Part shown: in pieces, positions 9,794-56,848 of the stretch
Layout of the letters: each line of letters begins with the position of its first letter
How positions within the stretch are numbered: the first letter of the stretch is position 1
Source of the DNA: Octopus bimaculoides
Lineage: Eukaryota
DNA length: 62,014 nucleotides
NCBI RefSeq assembly: GCF_001194135.2
Contig: NC_068981.1
Span: 98,669,776 to 98,731,789 of the forward strand
Reading direction: 5' to 3'
Notes under the pieces: generated by a model
Told to the model about the DNA's origin: nothing
Seen by the model: only the letters and a program-made list of their open reading frames with translations
The model's database searches: none
Position numbers and translations under genes: made by a program

Positions 9794-11748
9794 AGCAAGT
9801 CTTTATATTTTGATTTGTTTTCAGTAATTCCAAATTGAAATCTCTTTGAACATTGTTTTCTGTTTGCCTTTCTAAAGATTATTTGAAGCATCTTAGAATA
9901 CTGTAATTATTTTTATAGCTGTTTTTAAGCCTTGAGATGTGATTAGACAATATTTCTGCTTGAATCCACATTAATTTTGCAGTACATAATCAAATGTCAT
10001 ATTTATAGCAGTTAGTGCCTAAATCTTAAATAATGTTTTTATACGTTAGATTTTCATGAACAGTAAGAAGTTTGAATTGTTATAAGTATTTTAAAACTTT
10101 ATACATATGACTTTAACTACTGTGGATGTATCGAAGTTTAAACTCAAGCTCTTGTTTTTTAAATCCCAAAATGTTAATTATCTTTTATTGCTTTATTTGT
10201 AAACCAAAAAGACACTTTTATATCTTATTCTATGAAATTTCTGGTTATTTTCAATGGAAAGTTTTCAAAGTTCTGTTTACTATTTTTTAATCAGGAAGTG
10301 TCAATGTATAGCTTAATGGCCATTTTAGTACTTAATTTGATTTCAGTTATCCTTTGTGTAGAAAGTTATTTCTTCATAACATTTTTTTCTTTATGTGGTT
10401 TAAGAGTTGTTGCTAAGTCTTTGGTTTTGTCTTTATAAATCAATTTCTTGCCTGTTTAAAGCATACTGAGAAGAATTTTCATATCTGATGTGGTTTAGTA
10501 TTCATGTGAATCAGTGACTGTGGTTAAGGTACTGGGCTTTGAGCCCAGAATGTTCTGTTGCTTAGACCTCATTGCATTTGCTTCTGTAAACCTAGCTGAA
10601 AATATGTACCATGTCCACTTCATAGTTGGATATTAACGTATTCAGTCGGTGCCAATATTTTAATTCGTAGAAACATCTGTTAGCATGGTAAAAGGTTTTC
10701 TATTGAATTTGAAGGAAAACAACAGCATGAACATGAATTAGATTTTATAAAAATAGAACGTGTAGTATTAACTATTATAAAGTGTTTTTAAAGGTTTGTT
10801 TTCTTTTATGTCAGTTATCTAAATTAAAACTCATTACTAAGTAGAAATTTAATCATTCACCACTCTCTATTTAATCTTTATACTTTTCTTTCTCCTTACT
10901 CTCAAATTTTTGATATTACTAAAAGCATAACAACTATATGTTTGTTCAATTTTCTATTGTGCTGTTTGAAAATTTGGTTTGAAGTAGAAATTTCTATGTA
11001 ATAAAATTCTTAAATAAGTTAATTAGGGATGCTGATAGTTTGAAAATGTAACACCAACTTTTTCATGTTTCTTAATAAAAAAAAAATTATTTTGCAAGTT
11101 TATGAATTATATTTAAACTGATTTCAATGTTTCTAAGATATGTATGATTGTTACTATTATGTATTCCACTCAATATATATTCAGAAGTATTATTTCTTTG
11201 AAGTTTCACATGGATGAAGATGCACAAATTATCTATTTTATGGTTTCTTGATGAAAATAGTTCAGCCGCATGTGCAAACTTGTTTATCTACATCAGGTTA
11301 AATTGGATCGTTATCAATGAAGAAGTCTCATTTTTTTTTTATTATTCACTGAAACTCTAATATATATTTATATATACATATATATATATATACATGTATG
11401 TATATATATATATATACATATGTGTATATAAATACATAATGTAAATCTCAAAAAATTTTGCATTCCAGTTTCTGTTATTTGCACATGTTGATATAAATGC
11501 ATGCAAACACTATTTTGTTAAACTAGTTATTGAGATTAAGATGAGCCATGCCAAATCAGTTTGATCTTAGTGATTTGTGATATTTGCCTTCTTACAGAAG
11601 TCTTACCCTATTAGCTATAGTCACTGTTAATTCCACTAACTATTAATGTAACTCTTAATTCATTGATGATCATGTAGCACCATGCTTATTTACTGATTAT
11701 CATTGTTATTCAGGGTTGTACTTCGGCATCTGACGACCAGGGTACTCT

Positions 11749-11847
11749 ATGCTTGAAGTGCATAGCGAAGTATGCTAGTAAGACTGATGACTTTTTGTCT
11801 CTGCTCTCAGACTTACTGGCGTGCGTATCGCCATTCACTGTTGTCAT
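11749..11847 (+). ncRNA. pri-miRNA-like hairpin HP1 (candidate Drosha substrate)
   Basis: Manual pairing of arms 11757-11787 and 11807-11839, including 13 contiguous pairs (11770-11782 with 11812-11824, G:U allowed) and a 19-nt apical loop. Confidence 0.5.
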
Positions 11848-11878
11848 CTGGTCCGGCAGAGGCGAGGGCTGTCACACA

Positions 11879-11964
11879 TTGCACTCTCCTCTTGACCATG
11901 GTCGAGCCGGGTAGATTCTGTTATAACCCACCCCTTGACTTTCTGGTCATGTAGGAGGTCGCAA
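11879..11964 (+). ncRNA. pri-miRNA-like hairpin HP2 (candidate Drosha substrate)
   Basis: Manual pairing gives about 29 bp: TTGC/GCAA, TCTCCT/AGGAGG, TGACCA/TGGTCA, GGTCGAG/CTTGACT, GGGT/ACCC. Confidence 0.42.
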
Positions 11965-14900
11965 CACCTCAATTCTTGGACCTGGTGGCATCTCTGACTA
12001 CATACTTGTTGTGGCCTTGTGTTTCTGTCTACTGCTAACATTTACTGCTGAGTGTCTGCCTTGGTTTAGTGAACATCTACATTGTGTATGATCATCAGAA
12101 TCAGCATTTTTCATGGAATACTTCAAGTATTTTGATGCACTGCTTGTGATCCTGTACTGGAGTAAGTATAAATGCTTTGTGAGTCAATGTTTAGTTAGAG
12201 CAGATGTCATGGGGTCTATCATGTTTATATAATGTTAACAGATTTAATATTCTCGACCCCACTGTATCTGTAAAAATCTTTGTAAACATTTTTATTTATT
12301 TTTACTTCAGTTTTTTTTTTTTCATTTTAAGTCATTTTAATGTTTTATTTTAATTTCTTCAAAATTTAGTTTGAGTTGTCATTGAATATTCTTAGAGAAA
12401 ATTAATTTTATAATGAGTAAAACATGAAAGCATTTTTATATACTTCTCTTCCAAATTATGAGAAAAATCATAGAGATAGTAGCTGAACTGGTTAGTTTAG
12501 TGAATTGTGTTACCTAATGAAGTTAACTAAAATTTACATACTAACTTAATGTCAATGTTTACGATCAGTATTTGAAAGGATTAATTTTCAGGGATTCTAA
12601 TCTCAGATTAACCATTTTGATTCCAAGCTGCCTCTGGTTCACTAATATGAACCTTCCATCATAATTTTATTTAAGAAAATTTCCTAAGTTAAGTTTTAAG
12701 TATCTTAATAATGAAATTAGATATTTTACTAAACTCATTCAAAATTTTTCTATTTGTTTTCAAAATTAATTGAAACACATGAACAGTGTATTTCATTAGA
12801 AATATTATAACAAAACATTGGAATGATCTATTTGAGAACAGGAGATCTGATTGCAACAAAATGATTGACGTCTCTTTTGAGGAAAAAAAGTAATTTTGGT
12901 AATTTGAGGTGTTCTAAACATGTCAGAATTGTTTAATTGCTACTAAAGACAAACCAACACTGGCTAATACAATGAAATAGCTATTAAGTATTAAGAATTA
13001 GTATAATCAAAAGTGCATGAGCATACACGCATACTCATTTAAATATTTGTCTTTTGAAATAGTCAAGACTTTATAAAAACTTTACCTTTTCTTATAAAAT
13101 CATAGGTAAAGCTAATCATTATATATAAATGCTTCTACATTGCATTATAAAGTTAAAGCAAGTTCAAGAAATATTGATATTGTTTATGTATTAGGATTAC
13201 ATAAGACTACTTTATATTCTGTCCTGGTAAACTGTGGGGTTTTGCTTAGATCATTTTCATCCTCAAAGTTGTTTTATAATTCTTTCCAAGAATTTGTAAA
13301 GTAGGAATTACAGTTGTTAGATCAGGAATGCATAAAAAGTCTTTCATTTTTATTTTTGCAGAAGTTCAGGAGTTATTTTAGCAAATTGACATAATTGGTT
13401 CACCACCAAAATTGGGTGATTTTTCAGTCAAACCAAGTGAGTTTGAATTTACACACTTTTAATATAGTCAATTTATTTAATTAGTTAATAATTTTTGAAA
13501 ACCCTCCTACTTTAAGATGTTCTTGCATAATGCAAAAAGGTTAAAAAGCACAAAAAAAAAAAATTTACAAAACTTTGCATTGGTATTTTTCAGAAAATGT
13601 AGTAGTTCCACTGTAAAATTTTTGCTTAACTTAAAATCTTGTCGAGCTACTCTTAAATTGGTTAATACATGTGTTAGAGACTGAACAAAAGCCTTGTAGC
13701 TGTTACAATTCTACATTTCTGCATATATTTTATATTTATGTCTTTTGGATTGAAATCGTTATTTGATCACATCCCACAAAATCAGAATGTTCTTACTCAT
13801 CTGAGGATGATCAAAGAATATTCTGATTTAACTATAAAATGAAAGATGAGAACGTTTAAATCATTAGTAGTCATGTGGTTTGTGAATTTTAGTGGACAGT
13901 TTGTCTAGAAAATTTTTTAGAATAAAATCAAAGCTAGAATCTTCTAAAAAGTAGTGTCAGTGATAACATCTCACATTTTTATAGAAGAATGATGGGCATA
14001 TGTTTTGGGTTAAGGTTAGCTATTGATTCTGCTATTGATCTATAAACTAAAGCTGTGAGCAAAAGATAAGTCATTGGTGAATGATGTAAGGACATAGTGG
14101 ATTAAAATGCAAGCAATAATGATGAAATATTTGCAGAATGGAGGTACTTTTTTTTTTGTAGAAGAAAAACAATTGTTTATTTGCCTTCTTGGGATAAGAA
14201 TATGTAACAAGTATTAATATCAAAAATCTGTAGTAGCTGTAAAGTTGTAATGAAATAATGTTAATGCATTAGTTTGAAATAATATGGTTAAAGAATCAAA
14301 TTACTGGTGGATTTTTGAGTTGGAATTTTAAAATGAAAATACAAAAGTTTGAGCAATATCTATGTAGGAGTTTATGTAAATGTTTAACATGTCGTATTTA
14401 AATACTTTGCTGGTGTTAAAGTTCATTTACTCTGTTTTCAGATGTTTTCTGCTAGTAGATATATTTCAAAATAACCAAATCCTGTTTTGGATATAAACTT
14501 TATTGGTATAACTTTATAAATACATCGACACTCCAAATTGTTTTATGTTTCCCTTGTCAATACTGCACCATACATTCTAGACCACAAATGTTTTACTGAC
14601 CCTACAGAAACAGCACATATAGCTACTCAGTATCTATATTATTGTATACCCTTTAATCTTTGTTGTCTCTTGTTCACAAGATATTATTTGGCAGGAGTAT
14701 ATTACCTTCAAATAGCTAAAAAAAAAAAATGTTATTTCTTTGGTAATTTGTATAACAAATTATTGGGTAAAATGAATATGCCTTAAGTAAAATTTGTTTA
14801 TTTGCAGAACTTGGTGAGCTAACATGTAATCAGATTGTTCTCCTCAGCTCTTTCAGTGATGTTAGCGAATAGATATTGAGTGAGATATGCTTGTATACAA

Positions 14901-19928: not shown

Positions 19929-20274
19929 GCAGAAATTTCTCTAAACCGTTTTCTTCCTGTGGACCAGTAACATATGAACTCAGAGGAAAAGAAAAGCCAA
20001 TTAAGATATTTGCGAAATGATACCAACATTGCATGTAGCTTTCTCCTAGTTACCAGGACAAAGTGTGGAATAATAATTGCGGCTACTTTTAATAGTTGCC
20101 ATTTGTTAAAACCCCAGAGACTGGTGGCTTGGTTACATTTAACAAATGCCAAGCAATGGCTTCTTAGGTTTTAACAGTACTTTACAACTGCAGAACTGAA
20201 AGTATAATAGACTGCGAGTCACCTGCTATGAAGTCTCCCTATTCCAAAACTCCTGACCCTTGTTCCTGCTCAAG
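19929..20274 (+). other. Second candidate non-coding 5'UTR exon
   Basis: Acceptor ctttaatttttAG at 19927-19928 and consensus donor CAAG|GTAAGT at 20275. Unique sequence with an internal hairpin at 20096-20152. Confidence 0.35.
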
Positions 20275-21536
20275 GTAAGTATTGAGGTGGTCCTCAAGGA
20301 TGGATGGGTTGACTAACTGCTCCATCTTTCACAATATCTCTTTCTTACTCTGCTACTTATTAATTTCTTTCTTTTTGTCCGTATCTAACTAGTTGCTCCC
20401 TATTCCTTTTAAATGTATTCATGAAATAGGCAATGCTAATAGACTCATCACCTCAGATCTTGTTAGAATTGGAAAAGTAAGAAACCCCTTCCTTTCTCCT
20501 CAGTTTCAATATTTTTTCTTAACGGACCTTGACCTTCATCTTTACATTAAGGTAAAAACAAAGATATATAAGTACAGGATCACATGCAGCTTTATTGTTG
20601 TTGTTCTTGTTATACCTTTTTAAGGTTTGGCCTGTTTTTTTAGAATTACTTGATTTTAAAAACTAATGCTTCCTACATTTACTAGCATTTGCTGTTGTGT
20701 TTGTTTGTTTGTTTGTGTATGTGTGTGTATGTCATATATGTATATATGCATACGTACATAGATGATAGAGTTTACAATTTTTGTTAAATGAAGAGATGAG
20801 CAAAAAAGCCTTAAAGGTTCATTTTAGAAACCAATATTCATTTCTTTAAGAATTTTCTCAAATAAAGTCTTCAAAAGTGACTTAGGAAAAATATTCAAGG
20901 TAATCTCTCTCTTTCTTTCTCTCTCTCTTGTGCGTGTGTGTGTGCGTGGAAGTGGATTTGTGTGCACACACAAAACCATTCAATTTTTTTTATATATATC
21001 TTTTGATACACCTAATTCTCAAAAATACAAGAATTAAGCCTTTAAGTAGAAATATCAGATCCTGGTCGTGTTGAGTGACTTAACTTTCTCATTGCTTTGG
21101 AGTTTCCCATCATGTGTTCATCATTTATTGAATATTGGCTTCCATTGAATTCCAGTATTAATAATGTAAGATGTTGGTGTCATTTACTTAAAGAAGCCTG
21201 TTATTAGAAATGAAGTGTTAGTATGAAACTTGTTTTTCAAAACCTTTTTCATTTATTCATTTTTGTAAAAATGGTTTTTTGCTATTTATACAATAACTTT
21301 TAAGGCTGTCACATGAATTGCTGCTCAAAATTACAAATATCTACTGAATTTTTTATTTTGTCACCTAATTTTTAAAAACATTTGTATTTGTATTCAATAA
21401 AATTGTTTTTATTATCTTGATATAATTTTTTCTAAAAGAAATTTACAGTTTTATTTATTGTAATCAATCCTTCACATGCTTTCTGTAGGTAGTTTCATGT
21501 ATGGTAAGGCTAATGTAAGGGCATCTCTCTTTCCAG

Positions 21537-21713
21537 ATGAGGCTTAATTTCTTTGACTAGTTAGCAAGAGAGAGGTGGCTGAGCAGGTCTGTCCGGTTAA
21601 CAGTCCAGCTCTTTAGGAAAGAAGCTGATAGTCAAGCTTGGCTCTTTTATAGCACAGGTCCACAGCTCTGGCTTTAAGCTGTCTCATATCTACAACAAAA
21701 GTGATAAACTGCA
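21537..21713 (+). promoter_or_regulatory. 5'UTR portion of the ATG-bearing exon, with 7-codon uORF (MRLNFFD*, 21537-21560)
   Basis: Branch-point-like CTAAT at 21510-21514, pyrimidine tract tctctctttcc and AG at 21535-21536. The uORF is read directly from the sequence. Confidence 0.55.
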
Positions 21714-22272
21714 ATGGAAGTCCCTGGATCTCCATGCAATGCAGATGACGATGAAGCACAAAACAGCAATGATGAAAACTGTCAGAACCACATACTGCCA
21801 CCATCAACGCAAACGTCCAATCTAACTAATAATAAAAGGTTGTACTTTGACAGTGATGATGGTAGAAAAAACGACATAGACTATGGCTGCACTCCTGAAA
21901 AACGTCCACTAATTATGGCCCCTGTTTCTAGTGTTATTACCTGTGTTGAATCCTATTTAGACTGTGATCGAGAATCTAGACTTCCTAGTGGAGAACATTC
22001 TGCACAAACTTCTCATGTGTTTGAAATCATAGATGATATTGAACTGGATGATGATGGACTGGGTACTGATTTGAGTGCTCGGAGTTATATCTCAAACGGC
22101 CGGGAATCACTTGATCTTTCTAGCGACGATGATGATGAAGAATACTTGGATGATAACGAGGTCTATGCATGGTTGGAAGAGGGGGTTGACTCCCGCAAGT
22201 CTGGATCAGATGGAGAAACAAAAGATGACGGATCACAGGGGCCAATTGAAGTGCAAAAGATTGTTTTAAAAG
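21714..22272 (+). CDS. DGCR8: DGCR8/Pasha coding exon 1 (acidic, low-complexity N-terminus ending ...PIEVQKIVLK)
   Basis: ATG at 21714 (gcaATGG) follows an in-frame TAA at 21705-21707. Open frame to donor AG|GTAAAT at 22273 (phase 1), which splices in frame to the WW-domain exon. Confidence 0.9.
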
Positions 22273-22811
22273 GTAAATTATTATTTTTTTTTTTTTTTTT
22301 CACTTTGAAGTGCCTTTCATCCCCATAAGAAAATTTTATAATTTTTATTAATATTTCTTATCTATTATCTTGTAACTGCATTTCTTTTTAAATTACACAA
22401 CTTTCTTTCAACATCTGCTATGATATCAGATACATGAAAAACTTTGACAATTAATTTTATTCATCATTATTCCTAATTATGAGATCATTGAACTAATAAG
22501 GTTGCTTTTTATATGTATAAACCTATTTACTTTTTAAAGAACCTGCCCTGATTAAAAAAAAATTATGTAAAATTTCTTCTGATTAATACAGTCAGAATTT
22601 ACTAGCTACAACTATAGTTAATTATTTTAATCACAAATATCTTGTGAAATTAACATTAATATTATATTGTATTTAGAGCAAAATTTGGTTAATGATTTTA
22701 TACTGAATTTTAGAATCTATTCAGTTTATACCTGTATCAAACTGAACAGATTTATTTTAATAGTATTTAACAATACCTTTTCTTTTATATAAATAAAATA
22801 TATTGTTTCAG

Positions 22812-22954
22812 AGAGGGGCCATGATCCATTTGACATTCTACCAGAAGGCTGGATAATAGTAACTCATAATAGTGGCATGCCAGTTTATTTGCATAAAGAA
22901 TCAAGAGTATGTACTCTCTCCAAACCATACTTCTTGGGACCTGGTAGTGCCAGA
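22812..22954 (+). CDS. DGCR8: DGCR8/Pasha coding exon 2, WW motif ([48 protein letters not shown])
   Basis: Acceptor tgtttcAG, donor GTAAGT, 143 nt, phase 1 to 0. The translation closely matches the DGCR8 WW segment LPxGW...HNSGxPVYLHxESRV...SxPYFLGxGS. Confidence 0.97.
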
Positions 22955-23140
22955 GTAAGTATATATACATACATACATACATTTTATTTTTGCAGGCTTT
23001 TATGACTTATTACTTAATTTGGCTTCATACTATTCTGTGCTTTTTTTTTTTTTTTTTAATAAAAACAAAACTTTCCTGTGAGAGGCAAATAACATTACTT
23101 TTATATAAATTTTAATTTATTAATATTATACTCTTCGAAA

Positions 23141-23326: not shown

Positions 23327-24239
23327 AATACTGTACTCTTCTAAGTATGGTTAGTACAAGGGTTTTGACTTTTTATGTAGCAAGTTGTCTAAGACATAAG
23401 GCAATTACTGTTTACTTTTGGGGTTCTCTTGGAAAGAAAAGGTGTAGAGGAATTGTAAAGTGTTTTTATGTCTTTTATATGGATGAGGTGCTCTGGATAA
23501 AAAAAATCTAATGTAAGGTTTGATGCTAAAAAGATGTTATGCTGTATGGTAGGAATGGAATAATATTGGCTAGTATAATGACAAAAAAAAGTCATGAAGA
23601 GACAACACAGAATTGTTTTGACAGTGCTAAAATCTTAAGGCTTTCAAAATAGGTGTTAGTGTTGTAGCTATTCATGAGCAACTTTCAGCAAATAATTTTG
23701 TTTAGAGCACAAAGAGTTTGAACTCATGCACTTACTGCAATCTATCTATCTTTACATTTTTTGTGATAATTACACATTAAAAAAGATTACTTGTATATTT
23801 GAAAACATACTGCAGGACTTGGGTTTTGTTCTTGGTCAGAGTAGATGGTGCTCCTTGTTTCAATGTTTCCACCATGTCAGTGGGTTAGTATTTACAAATG
23901 ATGTTATTGTGAAATGATTCAATCATTTTGGTCACGTATCTGAATGGCTCCTATTTAATCCTTTAAAGTTTTATGATTTATTTAGCCTACCTTAGCAAAA
24001 CATATATCTACTTGTTTAAGCCCCTGGAACAGAAAAAAGGTTACATTGCTATTCAAGTGTTTAGAAACACATTAAATTATAAAAGCTTACACCGTTACAG
24101 TATGCAACAATATGCCAGATATATTGTTGCATACTGCAACAGCAAAAGCCTTGATACCCTATAGAAAATGAATCTTTAAAAGAAAACAGTACAATGATCC
24201 TAGAATAGTTGCTGGCAATCATTTCAGTTGATCGTTTAA

Positions 24240-24432: not shown

Positions 24433-24817
24433 TTAAATTTTACAATGAGATGTTTTAGTAAAAAGTCTAATGTTTGTCTGAATGAGTTAAATACTAGTCT
24501 GTGTCATGAGTTGTAATCTAGTCATAGACAATGTATTGTGCATTTGACTGGGTCTTAATTAATATTCAACTGAATTTAAATAAGTAACACAATTGCTCTC
24601 TATTTAAGTTACGAAAGAGCAACAGATTCAGCCATTTTTGTCACATATCTGAACTGCTTCTCTTTAATCTTATAGAATTTTATGATTTATTTAGCCTACC
24701 CTAAATTGTGTCTTAAATTAACACTTAATAGTGTCTAATATTATTGCTTATGATGTCTAAGTTGAGAATATTAACAATTAATTTCTTTACTTTTGTATTT
24801 TGTTTCTATTTTGCTAG

Positions 24818-24986
24818 AAACATGACATTCCTGTAAGTGCAATTCCTTGTCTTCATTATTCCCGTGAATTGGAGAAAGAATGTCAGCGTGGTACTCTTAA
24901 AGATCTTGAACCCTTAACTATCACTGAAGAACTTGAATGTACAGATAACCAAAATTCTGAACAAGCTGAAAATAATGATGAATCAG
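24818..24986 (+). CDS. DGCR8: DGCR8/Pasha coding exon 3, heme-binding region (KHDIPVSAIPCLHYSRELEKE...NDES)
   Basis: Acceptor ttttgctAG, donor GTGAGC, 169 nt, phase 0 to 1. Contains the KHD...IPCLHY motif of DGCR8. Confidence 0.96.
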
Positions 24987-26480: not shown

Positions 26481-26887
26481 CTCTTTACTCTTTTACTCTT
26501 TTAGTTGTTTCAGTCATTTGACTGTGGCCATGCTGGAGCACCACCTTTAGTCGAGCAAATCGAACCCAAGACTTATTCTTTAGAAGCCTAGTACTTATTC
26601 TATCGGTCTCTTTTGCCGAGCCGCTAAGTTACGGGGACGTAAACACACCAGCATCGGTTGTCAAGCGATGTTGGGGGGACACGCAAACATATACACACAC
26701 ATACATACATATATATACATATATACGACAGGCTTCTTTCAATTTCCGTCTACCAAATCCACTCACAAGGCTTTGGTCGGCCCGAGGCTATAGTAGAAGA
26801 CACTTGCCCAAGGTGCCACGCAGTGGGACTGAACCCAAACCATGTGGTTGGTAAGCAAGCTACTTACGACACAGCCACTCCTACGCC
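26481..26887 (-). mobile_element. Full-length tRNA-derived SINE (head, core, (TA/CA)n, tail, (AAGAGTA)n-like end)
   Basis: Head ggcgtaggagtggctgtgtcgtaagtagc...gggttcagtcccactgcg with A/B-box-like motifs; same family as 35701-36069 and 58453-58843. Confidence 0.85.
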
Positions 26888-27315
26888 TATATGTATAACA
26901 AATCAACATTTTTTGATATGATGTTGGTAGAAAAATAGGATTCACATATTAAAGGTTAGTCATGGCTATATAGTTAAGGAATTCAATTCACAATCTGTGG
27001 TTCTGGATTTTATCCCACTCCAGGTAGCTTTAGGCAAGCATCCTCTACACAACCTTGGGCTGATCAATGCTTTGTGAATGCAGTTTGGTAGATGGGAACT
27101 GTGCAGAAGCTTATCATATATCATCAGAATCATTTAACATCTGTCTTCCATGCTGGTATGGGTTGGACAGTTTCACAGGAGCTGACAAACCTGAGGAGTT
27201 CGCCAAGCTTTACTGTCTGATTTGGTATGGTTTCTACAGCTGAATGCCCTTCCTAGTGCCAGCTACTTCACAGAATGTATTGGGTGCTTTTTACGTGGCA
27301 CCAGCACTATATGTA

Positions 27316-29838
27316 CACTGAACTGCAAAAGAAATGCGAGACGTGTGTGACTGCGAAATATGTTTTAATTTCATTATGTCAGAGATAAATTTTGATAAAT
27401 CTGATAAAGTCAATTTCTTGGATGCACTTGACCACAGTCTATGGGTTGTTGTCATGTGTTCCGGTAGTGGGCGGATCCAGCACATCAAGATTGTAGGGCG
27501 TGACATGTTCAGTACTGTGTATGCCCTCCCTGAGTGTTCAAAACGGCCATACACTGTTGGTACATGGAGTGCATGAGTTGGTTCACAAAAGCCTTTGGTA
27601 CCTATGCCCACACCCTGAGGAAAGCTGCCTCCAGTTCCACACGAGTTGTTGGCCTTGAGACCACCTGGTTCAGCTGTCTCTGAATTTCATCCCACAGGTG
27701 TTGAATTGGCAGGCTGAGAGCCGGCCACAGCATGGTTCTGATGTGCTGATGTAGGAAGTCCATGGCGACCCTGGCCATGTGGGAAGGAGTATTGTCCTGC
27801 TGGAACACATGGCTTTGGTGATGTGTGAAGAAGGGCATGATGTGAGGTCTTAGGATCTGGTCAATGTAGCGCTGTGCTGTGATGCCACTCCCTCTGCCTG
27901 CACCAATATTTCGGAAAATATAGGATCCAGTTCTCTGATTCAGGCCTATAGCACCCAAAACCATGATGCTTTGGCCACCCCACCTGTCTCTCTCCATGAC
28001 AAATGCATCTGTAACGACCGTGCGACCAGGAGATGGTGACGAGGAATGGCTCCTTTAGCGCATCGCATGGTCGATACAAATAAAAAACGCGAAAAGAGGT
28101 TAAATGAGTATAAGTGCCAAAAAGGAAAAAAGAGAGATACAACCGGTAGAAGGTTTAAGAGAAGGTTTTATTGATATGTCAACTTGTGTGTGTGTGAGTG
28201 TGACATATAAACATAATAATAGACAGGCCATCATGCAAACAAAGTGTATGTGTATACAAACTTGGATGTATGTGTGTGAGAGAAATACAGAGCATAGAAA
28301 AGGACGTTAGAAGAAACTCCAGGCACAAGGATGGTAAATACCAGTTCGTATTGAAGGTACACAGTAGTTGAGGTGCTGTAAGAAGTTGTGGCTGCAAGGC
28401 AGAGCCGGGGAGACACATGTCGTGTAAGAAGTTGAGGCCTCAATGCTGCGGACGGTTACTTGGTACAGGAGTTCTTGCTCGTTGTACTCGCTGTTAACCA
28501 TGGTGAAGCATTTCACAAACAGCGTGGGGAAAAGCTATGCAAGTGCTGCTGGTGGTGTGTATGTAGAGAAGTTGATGTAGACGCTAAGAAGCTGGCGGTG
28601 GCGACAAAGGAGTTTGCAGTAAGCTGTTGAACGAAGTGATGGATCTCCATGAAGCTGTGTCGTGTTGTCGCTGGAACTGGCTGTGTGCTCTGTGGCCAGC
28701 GGCTAGACCTCAGAAGGTCTAAAGCCGACTTACAATCATATGCAGAAAAGCTAGCTATTTATAAGGTACTATCGGCTCAAACAGGGGTTCAGAAAAACTG
28801 TCCCACACGACCTTATTTGAAGGCTGCAATTGGTAGGGTTGCACCCTGGTGTGAAATAGAACAAGAGACAAAAATGCACCAATACCAACCAATCAGAGTG
28901 GTGGACACAACAGGGTCCAAAAGTGCGGCCGAAGGCTAGCTGTTAACCACTACGTCCGCACTCATGTATATATAACAGAGAGAGAGAGAAGTACACTACA
29001 CATCTCTGTATCGTTCACCCCTCTTACGCCACACCCGCACTCTGCCATTCGAGGTGGAAACGCAGTACCAGCTCTCGTCAGAGAAGACTATCAACCTCCA
29101 TTGCTGGTGCTGCCAATGTCAGTGCTGTGTAACCCACTGTAGTCGTGCCTGATGGTGGCAGGCAGTGAGGACAGGCCTTCAAACAGGATAATGGCAACAC
29201 AGGTTGTTGGCAGCCAGTCAACATCTTTCTGTGCTGTCGCTGATGTGTCGCTATCCAGTGGTAATGGTCTCACGAGCTGTCATGCTGATCAGTCTGAAGT
29301 GATCACAGAGGTGTTGCAGGTGGATGAAACAGTCCTGCCTGGGCGTGGTCACCCAGGGGCGCCCTCTGCGGGCAAAGTCTGCAGTGCTGTTGGTGTTGTT
29401 GTATCGCTGTTGCAGGCGATAGATGGTGCTAACATGGACATTGTAAGCTTTCACAACAACCAGGGCATGTTGTCTTGCTTGTAATTGGCCAATAGCTTGT
29501 TCTCTCTGCACTGCTGACAATCTGGTCATACCTGATGCATCCAAATTACGAATGCCAGGAACGTGGTTCAAGTTGATTTTTATACTCATAACCTCCATGA
29601 GATGCACATGCATTTTGGTTTTCATGACAATTGTTTGCAACTGCCACCCATGGCATTCAGTGCAGCTGCGTTTTGGTGTGTCATTTCAGGGAAAGTTGAA
29701 AGGTTACCTGCGATTTGGGTTTCAGTCATAAACCAGCATGTCTTGGAATATTTACGCTTAGATCCCCGAAATAAATTTTCAGAATTTACCATATAAAAAT
29801 GACATTTGAAAAAATCGCATTTCCTTTGCGATTCAGTG
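27316..29838 (-). mobile_element. Tc1-family DNA transposon, decayed transposase (29529 to 27509), interrupted by a solo LTR
   Basis: 24-bp TIRs match at 21/24 (cactgaactgcaaaagaaatgcga vs cactgaatcgcaaaggaaatgcga), left flank TA. Motifs GRPxVTTPRQD, VFSDES, FQQDN, IQHLWD, GGHTQY*. Confidence 0.92.
28010..29000. mobile_element. 991-bp solo LTR (probably Ty3/Gypsy) nested in the Tc1 transposase
   Basis: TGTA...TACA ends and 4-bp TSD CATC (28006-28009 and 29001-29004). Removing it restores the Tc1 frame ...RKRGERYRDAFVMERD. Confidence 0.85.
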
Positions 29839-33757: not shown

Positions 33758-34307
33758 CATCATCATCATCATCATCATCGTTGTTTAACGTCCGCTTTCC
33801 ATGCTAGCATGGGTTGGACGATTTGACTGAGGACTGGTGAAACCAGATGGCTACACCAGTCTCCAATCCGATTTGGCAGAGTTTCTACAGCTGGATGCCC
33901 TTCCTAACGCCAACCACTCAGAGAGTGTAGTGGGTGCTTTTACGTGTCACCCACACGAAGGCCAGTCAGGCGGTACTGGCAACGGCCACGCTCAAAATGG
34001 TGTATTTTGTGTGCCACCCGCACAAGAGCCAGTCCAGGGGCACTGGCAATGATCTCGCTTGAAAGTCCTTAGACATGCCGTGGGCACAAGTGCCAGAAAG
34101 GCGATGCTGGGCACAGGTGCCATCACAATTTCGCTTTCGCTTGCCCCAATAAGTCTTCGCAAGCTGAGTTTCATGTCCAATGAAGGAGACGACGTTGCCA
34201 TGGGTGCCACTCGTCGAATTTAATTTGATTTCGATTTCACTTGTCTCAACAGGTCTTCGCAAGTGGAGTTTAGTGTCCAATTTAACTCGATTTCGATTTC
34301 ACTTGCC
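33758..34307 (-). mobile_element. RTE LINE 3'UTR fragment with (GAT)n tail
   Basis: High identity to 36354-37270, 42328-42642 and 45191-45485; internal tandem subrepeats (gatttcgatttcacttg). Confidence 0.85.
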
Positions 34308-35700: not shown

Positions 35701-36069
35701 ATGACTGCAGCCATGTTAGGGCATCACCTTGAATGGTTTTAGTAGAACCAATCAACCTCAAGACTTTTTGTTATTAAGCTTAGTACTTATTCTATCAGTC
35801 ACTTTTGCTGAACTGCTAGATTATGGGGATGTAAATGCACCAACACCAGTTGTCAAGCAGTGATGGGAGACAAACATAGACACAAAGACACACACACACA
35901 CACACACAACAGGCTTCTTTCAGTTTCCGTCTATCAAATCCACTCACAATGCTTTGGTCGGCCTGTGGCTATAGTAGAAGACACTTGCCCAGTGTGCCAT
36001 GCAGTGAGACTGAACCCAGAACCATGTGGTTGGAAAGCAAACTTCTTACCACACAGCCACACCTGCACC
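35701..36069 (-). mobile_element. tRNA-derived SINE, near full length
   Basis: Same head, core and tail as 26481-26887. Confidence 0.8.
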
Positions 36070-36353
36070 TGGACATTTGTGCAATGATAAAAATCCAAAC
36101 AAAATATAAGCCTATAGAGGCAGATGAACTAACAGACACATATAGAATACAGAGAAAGTATCTAATTCTCGTGAAAATGTTATTTTCTACTTTTGATGTG
36201 ATGGCTTTATATGCAGGTAAGGATAAAACTTTGATGGAAATTAGGGAAAAACAAAACAGCCTATGCCATGAGATATGTTCAGATGTGATGGAGGTCATAA
36301 AATTGTTGACAGCTCCCTCCTTGTTGATTCACACACACATTCACATGCATAGA

Positions 36354-41488: not shown

Positions 41489-42066
41489 ATAAAGGAGAGA
41501 TACATTTTGGATAATATACTCCTTGATACAATATGCTTAACAAAAAGATGGGACGTTTACGGCAAGAAGACCTTTGATTTTAATATTTACTTGACCAAAG
41601 AAACAACTAACAACACTATATCATTTGTTTCAATGAAATTGAGCAAATTTTAAAAAAAACTGACAGAATTTTATGTTTATTACTTAATTATGATACCAAA
41701 ACAAATAGATTTATAAATCTTATGTCAAACTTTTATTGAAAACTTTCAACATGTCTGTATCCCTGCATACTTCAAATCTCTCCTTAGTGTTGTGAAACAC
41801 ATTCAGTTAGCATTTCAGGAGTTAGCTCCTGCACTGCTAACTGAATGTGTTCTTTAAGCTCAGCTAAATGGTCGCTTCATCTTAGAAATGGAGGTAAAGA
41901 AAATGATTGCTGCCAAAAGTGAGTTTAAAAAAATTATACATTAATCTCTATTTTTGTAAGCTGTCTTAATTTTTGTATGCAGTGTAAATGAACCAAATAG
42001 AAGCACATGTACATACTGCTAATTTAACAGTAAATGCCACAATAATTATTATAGATAAATTTCTTA

Positions 42067-42327: not shown

Positions 42328-43832
42328 CATCATCATCATCATCATCATCATCGTATAACGTCCGCTTTCCATGCTAGCATGGGTTGGACGATTTGACTGA
42401 GGACTGGTGCAACCGGATGGCTACACCAGGCTCCAATCTAATTTGGCAGAGTTTCTACAGCTGGATGCCCTTCCTAACGCCAACCACTCAGAGAGTGTAG
42501 TGGGTGCTTTTACGTGTCACCCGCTCGAAAACGGCCACACTCGAAATGGTGTCTTTTATGTGCCACCCACACAAGAGCCAGTCCAGGGGCACTGGCAAAG
42601 ATCTCGCTCGAAAACCCTACAAGGCCAGTCAGGCGGTACTGGNNNNNNNNNNNNNNNNNNNNNNNNNNNNNNNNNNNNNNNNNNNNNNNNNNNNNNNNNN
42701 NNNNNNNNNNNNNNNNNNNNNNNNNNNNNNNNNNNNNNNNNNNNNNNNNNNNNNNNNNNNNNNNNNNNNNNNNNNNNNNNNNNNNNNNNNNNNNNNNNNN
42801 NNNNNNNNNNNNNNNNNNNNNNNNNNNNNNNNNNNNNNNNNNNNNNNNNNNNNNNNNNNNNNNNNNNNNNNNNNNNNNNNNNNNNNNNNNNNNNNNNNNN
42901 NNNNNNNNNNNNNNNNNNNNNNNNNNNNNNNNNNNNNNNNNNNNNNNNNNNNNNNNNNNNNNNNNNNNNNNNNNNNNNNNNNNNNNNNNNNNNNNNNNNN
43001 NNNNNNNNNNNNNNNNNNNNNNNNNNNNNNNNNNNNNNNNNNNNNNNNNNNNNNNNNNNNNNNNNNNNNNNNNNNNNNNNNNNNNNNNNNNNNNNNNNNN
43101 NNNNNNNNNNNNNNNNNNNNNNNNNNNNNNNNNNNNNNNNNNNNNNNNNNNNNNNNNNNNNNNNNNNNNNNNNNNNNNNNNNNNNNNNNNNNNNNNNNNN
43201 NNNNNNNNNNNNNNNNNNNNNNNNNNNNNNNNNNNNNNNNNNNNNNNNNNNNNNNNNNNNNNNNNNNNNNNNNNNNNNNNNNNNNNNNNNNNNNNNNNNN
43301 NNNNNNNNNNNNNNNNNNNNNNNNNNNNNNNNNNNNNNNNNNNNNNNNNNNNNNNNNNNNNNNNNNNNNNNNNNNNNNNNNNNNNNNNNNNNNNNNNNNN
43401 NNNNNNNNNNNNNNNNNNNNNNNNNNNNNNNNNNNNNNNNNNNNNNNNNNNNNNNNNNNNCCCACTACTAACTTGGTCACCCAGATAGCGGAAGCTATCA
43501 ACTACCTCTAGTTTTTCTCCCTGGAATGAGATAGAAGTTGTTTCCTGTTTGTTTACAGTGTTTATTGCACCTGAACATCTGCCACATACAAAAACTAACT
43601 TTGTAGTTAATCTGCCTTTGATATTGCTGCACCTCTTATGTGTCCATAGCTTGCACTGGGTACATCTTATAGAGTTACTACCTACTCCTTTACTGCATAC
43701 TGAGCAGGGCCATCTACCTGAAGGGGTTTGTGTTTTATCTACCTTCCTACTTATTAGGATTTTGGTTTTTGCTAGGTTGACTCCGAGGCCCTTCGATTCT
43801 AGTCCTTGCTTCCACACCTTAAACTTCTCCTC
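42328..43832 (-). mobile_element. Young 5'-truncated RTE LINE spanning an assembly gap; ORF2 piece with PHD-type finger
   Basis: Open frame EEKFKVWKQGLESKGLGVNLAKTK...CSVC...CTQC...H..C...CGRC...LEVVDSFRYLG; 3' end identical in kind to other copies. Confidence 0.9.
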
Positions 43833-45190: not shown

Positions 45191-45485
45191 CATCATCATC
45201 ATCATCATCATCATCGTTTAACGTCCGCTTTCCATGCTAGCATGGGTTGGACGATTTGACTGAGGACTGGTGAAACCTGATGGCAACACCAGGCTCCAAT
45301 CTAATTTGGCAGAGTTTCTACAGCTGGATGCCCTTCCTAACGCCAACCACTCAGAGAGTGTAGTGGGTACTTTTACGTGTCACCCGCACAAAAACGGCCA
45401 CGCTCGAAATGGTGTCTTTTATGTGCCACCCGCACAAGCCAGTCCAGGGGCACTGGCAACGATCTCACTCGAAAATCCTACGGGA
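45191..45485 (-). mobile_element. RTE LINE 3' end running into a gap
   Basis: Nearly identical to 42328-42642. Confidence 0.88.
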
Positions 45486-47789: not shown

Positions 47790-49720
47790 CAGCATTTTAT
47801 TAATTAGTTTGACAGGTGGAAGGAGCTGTGTTAATGTCCAGAGAATTGGTGGGGTTAATGTTTTTGAATATTAACCACTGGGTACAGAAAGATATGGTAG
47901 GGAGGGAATTCCAGAGGAATGATATTTTGGGAGAAAATGTCTGGACAAACTGCTTAGCATGGGACCTGAGGGGAAAAGAGTGGACACAATATGGGTGATG
48001 AAAACAGGAGAGATGAATGAGTTGGGAGGACCTCAGTAAAAGTGACACAGATCCAGCTAGTTTCAAGTAGTAATGGTTGTAAAGGCAGAATGAAGGGAAA
48101 GCACATCTGTTAGCCTAGAGCAGGGGTCACCAAACTACAGCCCACAGGCCGGATCTGGCCTGCCGCTGCATTGTACCTTTTGTGTAAGTACCTGCAATGA
48201 GAGTTAATTCCTGCAGCGATCATGTTTTAACTTGCATTGTTGTGTTAAAACTGGTTTGAAGAGTGCCATATATAAAAGGGAATGACTTCAGTGAATTATG
48301 TCATATATTTTGCATATTTGACTGTTGAAAGAACTCACAAGAGAGAAGCATCTAATAGTTTCAAACTTTGATATTCATTCAAGTCCTATATAAGCGCCCT
48401 GTTTATACACTGCATTATTCATCAGTAAAGCACTCTGTTGGAAAAACTTAGATATTTCTTCTGTACTGAGACCTGTCATTTCTGTGGTGAATTTCATTCG
48501 GGGTCATGCAATTAATCACTGCCAGTTCCAGGCTTTTCTTGAAGAAATTGATTCTGAATTCTGTGATATGCCTTATAACACAGCAGTGAGATGGCTTAGC
48601 TGCTGTAAAGTCCTGTTTCGTTTTTATAAGCTCCAAAGAGAAATAGATATTCTCACCGAAAAGGATAGAGCTGATCTCCTTCTGTCAGATCCTACTTGGC
48701 TGTCAAAGTTGTCATTTTTGGTTGATATCACATCCCTCATGAATGAATTGAACTTGAAACTTCAAGAAAAGGATAACCTTATCTGTGATCTTTACAGAAT
48801 CATCAAGGATTTCAGAGAAAGCTATCATTGGAAGGAGGAAACTTCTTTCATTTTCAATGTTTCAAAGAGTTTTAAGCTGGAATTGCAGATGTCAACTTTG
48901 AGTTTCCAAAAGAAGATTATTTGTGACTTAAATAAGCATTTTTTGGAGAGATTTTCAAATCTCAACAAAATTGTGAGTGACATTCTGTTCCAGAATCTGT
49001 TTGATTATAACCTTGATGATATGCCAGTCAAACTACAGTTGAAGTTCATTAATTTGCAAGCAAATGACTTGTTGAAAGAGAAGCACAGAGAAGGAAAACT
49101 TGTTGAATTTTGTTGCTGCTTACTTGATAATGACCTTTCAGAGTTGAAGAAATTTGCCTCTAGTATGGCATCAATGTTTGGAACAACTTATGTATGTGAG
49201 CAAGTATTTTCAAAAATGAAGTATGTGAAGTGAGCACATCGAACAAGGTTGACTGATGAACATTTGAAAGCAATTCTCTTGGTTGGTTGCAACAATTCCA
49301 AAGCAAATGTTGATGATATCTTAAAAGCTAAATACCAGTTTCACAAATCACACTAATCTTTTTTGCTGCTTAGTTTGTGAGATTCGGATATGTGCACACT
49401 GGGTGTGATATAACTTATTGCTAATGTCACCTTTTTTGATAACCTTTTGGTAAATAGATATGTTGGTTGTTTTTATTTTTTGTGTATTTGTTGTATTGCA
49501 TTGAATGAGATGGTTAAGCGGCTCACGCGCATCACTCTCTCAGTTATCCAACCCACTGTGTTTGGTGACCTCTGGCCTAGAGGCTGGTGTGTTTTGCTGA
49601 GCAACTTCATGCTAATCAGTTCAGTTGCTTTTTTTCTTTTTTTTTTGTCATCATATCCAAGTTTAGGAGAAGAATTAAGTTGTACTGTTACAAAAAGGAT
49701 ATTACATTTTTGTGCCTCTT
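47790..49720 (-). mobile_element. Decayed CR1/L2/Jockey-group LINE 3' fragment, split by the hAT element
   Basis: Minus frames give ...QPL(A)NRCAFPSFCLYNHYY (PLxHRR-like) and HPYCVH...FSPKISFLWNSLP. The frame continues across the hAT insertion site. Confidence 0.6.
48121..49574 (+). mobile_element. hAT (Charlie/Buster/SPIN-GTF2IRD2-like) DNA transposon, internally deleted
   Basis: TIRs CAGGGGTCACCAAAC / CAGAGGTCACCAAAC (14/15) and perfect 8-bp TSD GCCTAGAG (48113-48120 and 49575-49582). Transposase C-terminal part 48484-49356 has VRWLS and MFGTTYVCEQVFSKMK motifs, with a stop at 49231-49233. Confidence 0.95.
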
Positions 49721-49723
49721 TGG

Positions 49724-51529
49724 GAACATACGAGTAGGGGTAACAACATCAACTGTAATCTTGTAGAGATGGAATCAACTGTGTGTCCCTCTTTATTTTG
49801 ATTGCAATGTATAGAAAAAAAAACAGACGAGTTCACATAAAATTTGTGCATGTGACTGGCAGTTTTTAATTATTTAAACAAATGCACAGCATTTGTTATA
49901 TATTGATTAAGAGTTCAGTACACAACACATGCCACCACAATCAGAAAGTCGATTCGGTGGGTTGCAGCTGGTATGTAATGATCTTCTGAATAACCTTTCC
50001 CCAGGAGAAGCAGCTTTCCCACCTGGTGAAGATCAGTGATTGAGTAGAACTTGCTGTAAATAGGGATACCAATCATCAGTGACAGGATTCCATGCAGATA
50101 AGGGACATTTGATGGTTTGGACAACTTGTTTAGCTTGCTCATTTGAATGTGGATGATAAGGAGGTATATATATGCTCTTTATGCCAAGAGTCGATAACCA
50201 ACCTTTCAATGTTGTAAATTCATGTGCGTTGTCTGATACAATAACTTTTGGCAGTCCAGACAGAGCGAAGAGACACGTCAAGCACTTTTTTATGTTTTAC
50301 TTTTTGCATGAGGCACAAAGGATGGCATCAATGTAGTTGGAATATGAATCGATGACAATAAGTAAATTGCTATTACAGATGAGGTAATGTTGCAGGGAGC
50401 ACCTATATCATGCATCATGTCTATCATGTGTCCATTAAATGGGGAAGATTCAAACTTGTGTTTTTCCAATGTGTGACTGATAAAAGTCCTGATTTCATCC
50501 TGATGACTCATCCTGCGATCATTGCTGGCACTTTAGCAAACTTTTGCATGGTGGCCTTTCTTGCCACAGTTTTTGCAGATAGCTTTTATTGCAGGGCATT
50601 TGTGGTGTGGGAACCAGAGTTTTCCACAGCAGTAACAGGATTTGTCTCTCAAAATTTTTCTTTTATTTTGTGCAGTCGTTTTGGAATAGGTAACGACTTC
50701 TCCTTTTGAATTGTTGTTGCAAAGAATGTTGTAAAAATTGTACTGTAGCTGCTAAACTGAGTTTGTTAACATCATTAGCTTGAAGAACTTTCTCTTTTTC
50801 CTTGCTGCTTCTTAGACTGACAACCAAGGCAGTATGAGTTTTTCACTCATTGGCATTTTAAACGTTTTCAGACTTTCAAAATCGCAGTATTCTCTGATAT
50901 GTTACAGATTTGAAAGAAATTGAGAAATTGATTCATTGGGTTGTTGAATAGTGGAGAAGAATTTTGTTCTTTTGGCTAGTATCAGTTTCTTTGAAGGAAC
51001 AATATTATACAGAATCAAATTTTTTAGGTCATTTTTGTAGTATTCTTCAAGATATTAATATCTCGGATAATTTTTAATGCTTGTATACCTACCAAAGAAA
51101 TGAATTTCATAGCCATAAGACTTTGGTCATTATCTTGTAGGTTATCCTTTAATTTGCCCGCATAAGCTTTTGCTTCAAATGCCATGAGCCGGGTTAAGAT
51201 GTCTTTGATTGACTGTAAGTTTATGTCATCAAGAGATTTTCCTTGCTCTGTCAGCGATAACATTGCCAAGTTTTGTTATTTGCGAATTCCTATCTATCTG
51301 TAGCGGAAGAACAACCAACAGCAGAACATATGAGAAGGGGTAACAACATCAATCGTAATCCTGTAGAAATGGAATCAACTATGTGTCCCTGTTTATTTTA
51401 ATTGCAATATATAGAAAGAAAACCCAGATAAGTTCACATAAGACTCATGCATGCCATGTGACTGGCAGTTTTTAATTATTTAAACAAATGTATAGCATTT
51501 TGTTAGATACTGATTAAGAGTTCAATACA
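49724..51529 (-). mobile_element. Ty3/Gypsy LTR retrotransposon, internally deleted (gag, protease trace, integrase core; no RT/RNase H)
   Basis: Direct ~200-bp repeats at 49724-49922 and 51324-51529. CCHC knuckle CKNCGKKGHHAKVC, DIGA protease-like motif, integrase VIVSDN...PPYHPHSN. Confidence 0.85.
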
Positions 51530-52351: not shown

Positions 52352-53836
52352 GTAAGTAAATTTATATTATGCCTTTTGTCATGGAAGTTTGCTTGTGGCA
52401 AACTTCATCATCAACATTACCATCATCATGCATCTGTTTTCCCATGGATTGAATTTGATGTATTTGATATTTCTCTCTATCAATTTTCACATTTGAGTAA
52501 CATTCTTTGCATTAATTGCAAAAAATTGCCTATGGAAGTAACTCAAGTGGAGCAATTGGATGATTTTAGATAATTCAAGTAGATAGTGATCTACTGAATA
52601 ACACAATTCATATTGTCATGCATTAATACAAAATTTTCCTCATTCTCTCATATAGCATATCAAAATTGTTTGAGATGATTCTGCAAATTTTAAAAGTTTG
52701 CAGCAAATTTACAACATAAATACTTTGCTATTTCTAAAATGTTGAAAAAAGGGATATCCTTTAACCCCAAAAAGTCAATTTTTCTTTATTTAAGTGTGTG
52801 TGCGTGTGCGCGCGCACACACACACACTTAAAATGAGTTTCTTTGGTTAGAGGATATTCCTATTAAATACAAATGCACTTTTCATCAGTGTGTTTATATA
52901 TATATGTGTGTATACACATGTATACATACCTAAGTTTATTTTTCTGTTAAAAGTATTTTCCCGAAAACAATTTATATGAATTAAAGTCCTTTTGAATTAA
53001 TAATGAAAAAAATTTGAAACAGCTTGAGAGGCAACAAAAAGAAGGTCCAGTAAAAGGAGATGAAAATTTGACATTTTCATTCCTATTTCATGCTGTCCTT
53101 TTTAATTGGTTTGTCAGAGAAGGGTATTGGCCATGGTCCTTTCCAAAATCTTTGAGAGTGGTGGTGGTGGTAGGAGGAAGTTATCTGAATTCTTGCAGTG
53201 TTGTGAATTCTGTTTCAGGTGGTCTTCCATACCATTTCCATCTACCATATAAGATTTTTGGGGTCCATGCAACAAAATAGTAAATTGGGGATCCACATTG
53301 TATTTCAAGAGCCCCTGAAAAAATTTTTGCTTTAGATCTATGTATCGATATGTATTGCAAGAAACAGCCAGATTTCTTTCTTTAAAGTTTTACATAGTTC
53401 AACCTACACAAGTTAATATGAAAAACAAAATAGAATTTTGAAAGAAATTTCTATAAAACTAGTTTTTAAATATTGAATGGCTATGGGAGTCCACCAGAAT
53501 AAAATAGTAATCAAAATGGTTGAGAACTCTTGCTTTAGTTGATCTGAGGTTATGGTACTGTGCAGTGGGATTGAACCCAAGCCTACATGGTTGCAAAGAA
53601 AACTTCATCACTACATAACCATACATGGATTAATTCTTATGAGTCTTTTTGAGAGGAAAAACATTCTTTTTATCAAGATTTTGAGTATTTGTTGTTTCTT
53701 TTTAAAGCTATGAAATGATTTAGCATAGAATTCTGTGGCACAATTATGACAAATAAAACTTCAGTGTTTATATCTACAAGTTTGTAACACAAAGTTCTGA
53801 TGAATACTGTTTTGGTATTCTTTTGTTTACTTACAG

Positions 53837-54800: not shown

Positions 54801-55434
54801 GAGCTGGAAAGAAGACAATATTGATGGTGATACAAGAAGGTGAGTGTATTAGAGAATATGGATATAAAATCGGGAAGGATGAGTGGATAAGTTCATTAGA
54901 GCGTGAGAGTAGAGTGACGGGTAGTCATGAGCAGGTTCAGAGGTGACTAGGAACTAGAACGAGGCATAAGTGTAGTTGATGGTAAATAACAGTATGAGAG
55001 GGAAGGTGAAAGAAATGGGTGTAGTTCAGAAAAGGTGATAAGTGGCAATACCAGAAGTATGGAGAATGGTAGTAGAATAAACTTGTAGTTAGATCAGATA
55101 ATGGGTAATCAGAAGGTGAAATGTAAATGAGGGCCACTACTTAAACTGGTCAGCCAAATAGTAAAATTAGTCCCACACTCATGCTTTACAGATAAATGGT
55201 TAGCAGTCCAAAGTTTATCTCTGAATTACTTGTTCCAACATCTATAAAATTGCATGAATTTGCAAGAAATAGTGTGATAGGGTGAGATTTAATGTCCTAT
55301 CATTAACTACACTTTTTTGGATGCTTCATAAATGTAGCATTAAGGTGGTTTATTCCCCAAATAAAGCTCATAGGTACTGTCAGTTCTACTCATATAGATT
55401 AGCTTGAGAGTTGATGTACAACTTTTTATTTCAG

Positions 55435-55536
55435 AATTTGTTCTAAACCCTAGTGGCAAGTCTTATGTGTGTATACTACATGAATACGTCCAGCATACAA
55501 TGCGGGTACAACCACGATATATTTTTAGAGAAGTCG
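55435..55536 (+). CDS. DGCR8: DGCR8/Pasha coding exon 8, dsRBD1 N-half (EFVLNPSGKSYVCILHEYVQHTMRVQPRYIFREV)
   Basis: Acceptor tttttatttcAG, donor GTAAGT, 102 nt, phase 1 to 1. NPxGKSxVCILHEYxQ is the DGCR8 dsRBD1 start. Confidence 0.97.
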
Positions 55537-55676
55537 GTAAGTTTCTTTGTTTTGTTTTTTCGTTCCTATTTTTCTTTGCGATTTTTAAAGCTGTGAAAAA
55601 AACATTGCTTAATTTATGTGATTTTCTGCTGTTTTAATTTTGAAAATCCATAAAAATATTTTCTTTAATTTTGTAG

Positions 55677-56652: not shown

Positions 56653-56848
56653 TTAAAGATTCTTCATTGACTTGTAATTGATATTTGTGTATGAAGATTA
56701 TAGCTTTATTACATCATGAAACAATGTTCAGTTAAATGTTTTTATATATATTGGTTTGAGTTGAACCAAACTGTGAAACATTGTTTCAATCTCTCTATTG
56801 TTTACATGAAAGCTCATTATTTTTGGCTTTTTTTATTTCTCATTTTAG

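Follow-up and report, generated by a model that had tools for sequence, protein, structure and literature searches.

Two predicted pri-miRNA-like hairpins in a conserved putative leader exon of an octopus DGCR8/Pasha orthologue

The locus and its host gene

The stretch of DNA analysed here (the window) covers 62,014 nucleotides of the Octopus bimaculoides assembly GCF_001194135.2 (NCBI RefSeq; contig NC_068981.1, positions 98,669,776 to 98,731,789 of the forward strand) and is AT-rich eukaryotic sequence that contains microsatellites and assembly gaps. Judged by sequence homology, the window encodes an orthologue of DGCR8/Pasha on the + strand (Table 1). Besides the coding exons listed there, tblastn with a DGCR8 query found pieces of the Rhed region, likewise on the + strand, and a Pfam dsrm match was obtained at 1e-12. 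Relatives of the coding exons in the database carry the names "microprocessor complex subunit DGCR8" or "partner of drosha", and the best-named among them are molluscan (Littorina, 73%). A putative non-coding leader exon holds the two predicted hairpins HP1 and HP2, and 9.4 kb separate it from the first coding exon downstream.

Exon 2, in which the main reading frame begins, opens with a conserved upstream open reading frame (uORF), ATGAGGCTTAATTTCTTTGACTAG (MRLNFFD, then stop). Within 21480-21713, four sequences from three species are near-invariant across the ~50 nt that close intron 1 (GGTAAGGCTAATGTAAGGGCATCTCT and TTTCCAG) and the ~90 nt that open exon 2. A hairpin of the vertebrate kind at the start of the coding sequence was ruled out, with 21530-21760 folding at a z score of +0.85.

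Table 1. Features of the DGCR8/Pasha locus and blocks aligned with the orthologous locus L003 (window coordinates)
Feature	Position	Strand	Description
Conserved upstream flank	11655-11713	+	~86% identical from 11655, versus 53% further upstream
Conserved non-coding 5′UTR exon (putative)	11714-12161	+	448 nt; holds HP1 and HP2; 8 upstream ATGs
HP1, pri-miRNA-like hairpin	11757-11839	+	core 11765-11831; 19-nt loop 11788-11806
Full HP2 stem-loop	11842-11990	+	~149 nt; 21-pair lower stem, 7-nt asymmetric internal loop, HP2 core
Asymmetric one-sided internal loop	11873-11879	+	CACACAU; between lower stem and HP2 core
HP2 core	11879-11964	+	arms of 33 and 38 nt, 30 pairs
HP2 apical loop	11913-11925	+	13 nt; UGU at 11919-21 in the window only
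Two overlapping CNNC motifs	11965-11970	+	CACC, CCUC; 14-19 nt 3′ of the predicted 3p Drosha cut
5′ splice site	12162-12171	+	GTAAGTATAA; 100% identical in L003, identity then falls to 43%
Exon 2, 5′UTR part	21537-21713	+	after conserved 3′ splice site TTTCCAG/A at 21536/21537; main ATG 21714; four-way alignment
DGCR8/Pasha coding exons	21714-57610	+	N-terminal exon, WW exon 22793-22954, dsRBD exons ~55434-57610; tblastn
Aligned block, leader exon	11647-12171		91% identity over 528 nt
Aligned block, short hairpin	20103-20191		83% identity
Aligned block, coding exon 2 and leader	21497-22275		71% identity
Aligned block, WW exon	22806-22962		82% identity
Aligned block, next exon	24798-24879		82% identity

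A conserved putative leader exon

The contigs from close and distant relatives that carry the N-terminal exon (L001-L009 and L016-L019) are genomic and, L003 aside, too short to extend to the leader exon. The leader exon was aligned from L003 alone, the orthologous locus of a single, deeply diverged relative, making this a comparison of two species. Between 26 kb of the window and L003 only five blocks align, and the introns do not. The leader exon, a short hairpin block and exon 2 follow one another in the same order in both. Conservation at the leader starts ~60 nt before ttattcag/G (11713/11714) and stops 10 nt past GGA/GTAAGT (12161/12162). This confinement between splice consensus sequences, together with the shared order of the blocks, argues for exon status. 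The interval 11714-12161 would then be a 448-nt 5′UTR exon, presumably spliced to exon 2, and could be either the first exon or an internal, possibly alternative, one. The conserved flank just upstream could be a core promoter, or it could be the region of the exon's 3′ splice site.

Third codon positions are 53% identical to L003 in both coding exons tested, so that neutral sites are near saturation, and the leader block is conserved to about the same degree as first codon positions in the WW exon (92%). The hairpins account for only part of this constraint, since the part of the exon outside them (12001-12161) is equally conserved at 92% identity and 12013-12162 is without significant structure (z +0.7). 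Coding potential of the leader exon was ruled out, as indels break every ORF between the two species. Its six-frame translation gave no match in a protein search, an exhaustive representative search with a 65-aa antisense ORF returned only two repetitive, unrelated proteins, and exact-pattern scans for the exon in metagenome contigs yielded only five chance matches of 20-24 nt. An origin from a transposon or other repeat was likewise ruled out, the exon being single-copy in the window. The modelled spliced leader is 625 nt long and contains nine upstream ATGs (uATGs); most uATGs and uORF frames are not conserved, and the ATG at 11772 reads GTG in L003.

Folding of the two hairpins

HP2 was originally predicted as a hairpin of about 29 pairs over 86 nt (11879-11964), standing 31 nt downstream of HP1. 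RNAfold gives 30 pairs over the same 86 nt, with a dG of -33.2 kcal/mol and a z score of -3.85, and all five helices named in the original prediction are present at their coordinates. None of 200 dinucleotide shuffles folded as well as this core. Whether folded within the 506-nt exon context or as part of the modelled spliced 5′UTR, the HP2 pairs have a mean probability of 0.83, with the core above 0.9, and the L003 counterpart adopts the same fold (-34.1, z -3.6). When the reverse strand of the 86-mer is folded alone it reaches -35.4 (z -4.3), about equal to the + strand, and energy alone therefore assigns no strand to the isolated 86-mer.

The limits first set for HP2 proved too narrow, as the stem goes on downward by a further 21 pairs. 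The HP2 core is the apical two-thirds of a ~149-nt stem-loop with ~50 pairs in total, and the supposed 31-nt spacer between the hairpins is the 5′ strand of the HP2 lower stem and not single-stranded. The helices of this lower stem (11842-48/11984-90, 11850-55/11977-82, 11858-61/11973-76 and 11864-67/11967-70) have pair probabilities of 0.75-1.0, mostly at least 0.9, and a mean of 0.93 in the modelled spliced UTR. In the one-sided loop that separates the lower stem from the core, 11873-11875 are unpaired (pairing probability at most 0.02), 11876-11878 pair at ~0.2 and U11879 at ~0.5; this loop may act as a junction for the positioning of Microprocessor. Folded as a whole, the extended HP2 has a dG of -58.1 (z -2.9) on the + strand versus -52.1 on the - strand, and its L003 orthologue reaches -64.6 (z -3.7).

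Two nucleotides separate the base of HP1 (11839) from that of the extended HP2 (11842). With arms of 31 and 33 nt and three U-G pairs, HP1 folds with a dG of -33.1 (z -3.61) on the + strand versus -27.7 on the - strand, a difference of 5.4 kcal/mol; its core has a pair probability of ~0.99 in the exon as well as in the spliced UTR. Relative to L003, both substitutions in the HP1 stem change A-U to G-U, while an indel and one further substitution lie in the loop. Directly 3′ of HP2, a third, weaker stem-loop is found at 11993-12100 on the + strand (dG -27.7, z -2.2), with a 4-nt deletion in its upper part in L003.

A 90-nt sliding scan of the window returned ~20 loci at or below -33 kcal/mol, HP1 and HP2 among them. 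Most of the others are TA/CA microsatellite palindromes, near-perfect inverted repeats or G+C-rich repeat-like sequence, and HP1 and HP2 are each single-copy in the whole window.

Of the sequence motifs associated with the hairpins, a basal UG is found in the HP2 core at 11880-81, and that of HP1 is not conserved in L003. Two of the seven HP2 substitutions fall in the apical loop, and the UGU there is thereby absent from L003. The CNNC motifs are kept in L003 but are predicted to be paired within the lower stem.

Selection on pairing and strand

A substitution test was applied to HP1 and the extended HP2 together (239 nt, of which 168 are paired and 71 unpaired), where the window and L003 differ by 16 substitutions plus one indel in the HP1 loop. 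Nine of the substitutions are in unpaired positions and seven in paired ones, where the pair survives in five cases and is broken in two. Placed at random, the same substitution types would on average break 5.96 pairs (P = 0.011 for two or fewer). Read on the + strand, each of the five pair-keeping changes exchanges A-U and G-U; on the - strand a single one of them is valid. Further, the loops change faster than the arms, the arms being ~94% identical and HP1 and HP2 92-94% identical to L003, and the + strand is 5-6 kcal/mol more stable for both HP1 and the extended HP2.

The common structure given by RNAalifold for the two sequences has 82 pairs; five of them show a one-sided change, and double compensatory changes are absent. 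Collectively, the hairpins are under strong purifying selection on both sequence and pairing, and we conclude with high confidence that the DGCR8 leader contains a selected RNA structure on the sense strand.

Candidate Microprocessor substrates and a proposed feedback

By analogy with DGCR8 and pasha in other animals, we propose, with moderate confidence, that HP1 and HP2 are pri-miRNA-like Microprocessor substrates in the DGCR8/Pasha leader and serve in autoregulatory feedback. When Microprocessor (Drosha plus DGCR8) is abundant, it would cut HP1 and HP2 from the mRNA or pre-mRNA of its own subunit, and the cut would part the cap from the coding region and destabilise the message. DGCR8 synthesis would then drop, providing a homeostatic negative feedback.

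The stem length and loop of HP1 and of the HP2 core fit the dimensions of Drosha substrates. The cut register of Drosha can be derived from 13-bp and 22-bp rules, and the 3′ cut predicted in HP2 was placed by the 13-bp-from-base rule. One register would lie ~13 bp above the 11879/11964 junction and yield a ~58-nt pre-miRNA (11893-11950), and a second would lie ~13 bp above the 11842/11990 base. We infer both Drosha cleavage of HP2 and the position of the cut.

Several features count against the cleavage reading. Canonical Drosha substrates need single-stranded flanks. The flanks of HP2 are instead paired into the 21-pair lower stem, behind the 7-nt one-sided loop, so that by prediction the single-stranded flanks are lost and the CNNC motifs buried, which counts against a canonical substrate. 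Neither the UGU of HP2 nor the basal UG of HP1 is conserved, and it is the whole exon that is conserved.

A DGCR8 transcript contig (L015; Logan SRR10279846), which is 73% identical in the WW region, includes 386 nt of leader. Its positions 218-306 form an 89-nt 5′UTR hairpin ~80 nt upstream of the AUG (dG -33.7, z -4.8). No sequence similarity was found between the L015 leader and HP1 or HP2, and this hairpin fits a pattern in which the layout is conserved and the sequence is not.

A more elaborate version of the proposal is speculative, and we think it unlikely to hold. It treats the leader exon as an ultraconserved composite sensor, in which the double-length stem-loop 11842-11990, with a 2-nt linker to HP1, would give Drosha a choice of two registers. 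Functional clade-specific miRNAs, or cleavage that competes with exon inclusion or splicing, would have kept its sequence frozen from a deep cephalopod split onward. If this were true, Microprocessor feedback with non-homologous hairpins would be present in all three bilaterian superclades, independently acquired or retained.

Comparison with known systems

The vertebrate DGCR8 hairpins are mir-3618 in the 5′UTR and mir-1306 at the start of the coding sequence (Han 2009 and Triboulet 2009, cited through PMC2736397 and bioRxiv 10.1101/2025.09.09.675111), with clade-deep conservation and a role in a Microprocessor homeostasis loop. The octopus locus shares with them the host gene, the sense strand and two adjoining hairpins near the 5′ end, but HP1 and HP2 have no homology to them in sequence. 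Unlike in vertebrates, where the second hairpin is inside the coding region, both are non-coding here and the start of the coding sequence is without a stable hairpin. The likeness to the two-hairpin design of vertebrate DGCR8 that was originally drawn is therefore supported by the DGCR8/Pasha host on the + strand, the conserved upstream non-coding exon and the sense-strand pattern of substitution, but not by the placement of the hairpins. With both in the 5′UTR, Drosophila pasha is the better match. Assistance of a suboptimal hairpin by an optimal neighbour, which the original prediction also raised, finds no support in the sequence, and ERH/SAFB cluster assistance would likewise be conjectural here.

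The 5′UTR of Drosophila pasha contains two hairpins, Dmel_422 and Dmel_474. Drosha cuts them in vivo in a negative feedback, and they give few small RNAs (PMC5749182, through which Kadener 2009 and Smibert 2011 are cited). The octopus locus resembles it in having two pri-miRNA-like hairpins, here predicted, in the 5′UTR of a protostome DGCR8/Pasha mRNA. It differs in that there is no sequence similarity, that a separate exon, 9.4 kb upstream of the coding sequence, holds the hairpins, and that HP2 has a 21-pair basal extension; further, cleavage has been shown in the fly and is predicted here. Between mammals and flies, the layout of the DGCR8/pasha hairpins is conserved and their sequences are not, and cutting destabilises the mRNA (PMC2736397; PMC5749182; bioRxiv 10.1101/2025.09.09.675111).

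The length of the HP2 stem has a parallel elsewhere. In long invertebrate hairpins, internal unpaired regions position Pasha (PMC12553114). HP2 is like such "giant" hairpins, for example mir-989 (PMC12553114), in having a stem well over 35 bp with an internal unpaired region that could position Pasha/DGCR8. In the mir-989 type the stem is extended beyond the miRNA duplex towards the loop, whereas the extra helix is basal here, and the stem as a whole, with ~50 pairs, is modest.

Rfam gave no matches over the whole window at gathering thresholds and none overlapping 11700-12000 when 11000-12800 was searched at E up to 10, so that no miRNA precursor family was matched to HP1 or HP2. A full-text literature search found no paper describing DGCR8 leader hairpins in cephalopods, and neither DGCR8 nor Drosha is mentioned in a paper on octopus miRNAs (PMC9699675). 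Such hairpins have apparently not yet been described in molluscs. By analogy, the octopus leader is most likely a lophotrochozoan instance of the DGCR8/pasha leader hairpins, unusual in its whole-exon conservation and the double-length stem of HP2.

To our knowledge, experiments have demonstrated hairpin-based self-limitation of Microprocessor through DGCR8/pasha mRNA in vertebrates and Drosophila only. If it also operates here, the presence of non-homologous but equally placed hairpins would argue either that bilaterians inherited the circuit from their common ancestor while its hairpins turned over, or that it was repeatedly reinvented, and either reading would place the control of DGCR8 dosage under strong selection. 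As the leader exon is ~92% identical between the two species, it would offer a clean natural substrate for learning what, beyond the stem, Microprocessor reads. It is also of relevance to coleoid cephalopods, for which an expanded miRNA repertoire has been reported (PMC9699675).

Alternative explanations

HP1 and HP2 could be ordinary trans-acting miRNA genes that reside in the DGCR8 leader, with selection on the mature miRNAs or their targets and feedback as a by-product, a reading compatible with the proposed feedback. Conserved arms with a variable loop are the typical miRNA pattern. HP1 and HP2 display it, their sequence too being frozen, with arms ~94% identical against a near-saturated neutral background, and a third hairpin of the same pattern lies in intron 1; further, the vertebrate DGCR8 hairpins are annotated as mir-3618 and mir-1306 (bioRxiv 10.1101/2025.09.09.675111). 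However, there is no Rfam family match, conservation is just as high in the exon outside the hairpins, and small RNAs from the DGCR8/pasha hairpins are scarce in vertebrates and flies (PMC5749182), which leaves trans-acting miRNAs a possible but doubtful explanation of the conservation. It is less probable again that the leader controls translation or stability without Drosha cleavage, the hairpins serving with the uORFs as scanning barriers or protein platforms. The leader is, at 625 nt, highly structured and contains nine uATGs, and conservation spans the whole exon and continues into the exon-2 leader with its conserved uORF. Yet most uATGs and uORF frames are lost between the two species, through indels and changes such as that at 11772, and both hairpins are of Drosha-substrate size in the one gene with known substrates of this kind.

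Cephalopods edit RNA heavily, and editing constrains flanking sequence. The long imperfect duplex (~50 bp) could therefore be an ADAR substrate in which conservation keeps the editing structure, and all five pair-keeping differences between the species are indeed A/G. These differences are, however, genomic and not at the RNA level, each is opposite U as in wobble-neutral drift, and a site in the UTR would be without coding consequence; we give editing little credence. Conservation at the DNA level, by a promoter-proximal element or enhancer of DGCR8, deserves even less. On that account the hairpins would be incidental palindromes, with GACCATGGTC, for example, as a factor-binding site. The G+C content of the block exceeds that of the surrounding sequence, and the block stands at the 5′ end of the gene, where its 5′ limit could be a promoter, but it ends exactly at a 5′ splice-site consensus, and neither the avoidance of pair-breaking changes (P = 0.011) nor the confinement of tolerated changes to strand-specific wobble is predicted by DNA-level selection. 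Least probable of all is the suggestion, made in the original prediction, that HP2 is a structural switch, with an alternative AGAGG/CCUCU fold or palindrome dimers. Both alternative pairings exist in the sequence, the self-palindrome GACCATGGTC at 11894-11903 and AGAGG/CCTCT at 11858-62/11888-92. In partition-function folding of the exon, however, the competing helix has a pair probability of only ~0.06, against at least 0.9 for the HP2 core pairs that it would displace, so that a thermodynamic switch is unsupported. AGAG (11858-61) instead pairs with UUCU (11973-76) in the lower stem, with a probability of 0.75-0.91.

Other features of the window

Another conserved hairpin, the third in the DGCR8 gene, lies in intron 1 at 20103-20185 on the + strand and corresponds to L003 7342-7425. 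Its arms are near-identical in both species and its loop has diverged, the classic miRNA pattern; its dG is -25.8 (z -2.3) here and -31.9 (z -4.8) in L003, and it has no Rfam match. It is a candidate intronic miRNA or further Microprocessor substrate. Sub-threshold Rfam hits to mir-297, mir-466, mir-3149 and others at 11362-11440, on both strands, were dismissed as low-complexity artefacts of a TA/TG microsatellite.

The DGCR8 introns also contain near-perfect long inverted repeats at 24071-24160, 41791-41880 and 52761-52850, with energies down to -41.8 kcal/mol per 90 nt, which are probably transposon terminal or MITE-like repeats. Two dispersed repeat families recur as ORF fragments ('YQIHSQGFGRPEAIVEDTCPRCHAVG...' and 'MKPDGYTSLQSDLAEFLQLDALPNANHSESVVGAFTCHP...') at 26658-26921, 35860-36087 and 58337-58926, and also at 33837-34052, 42407-42640 and 45270-45480. 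Reverse-transcriptase and transposase-like fragments are found around 27600-29640 and 48484-50511.
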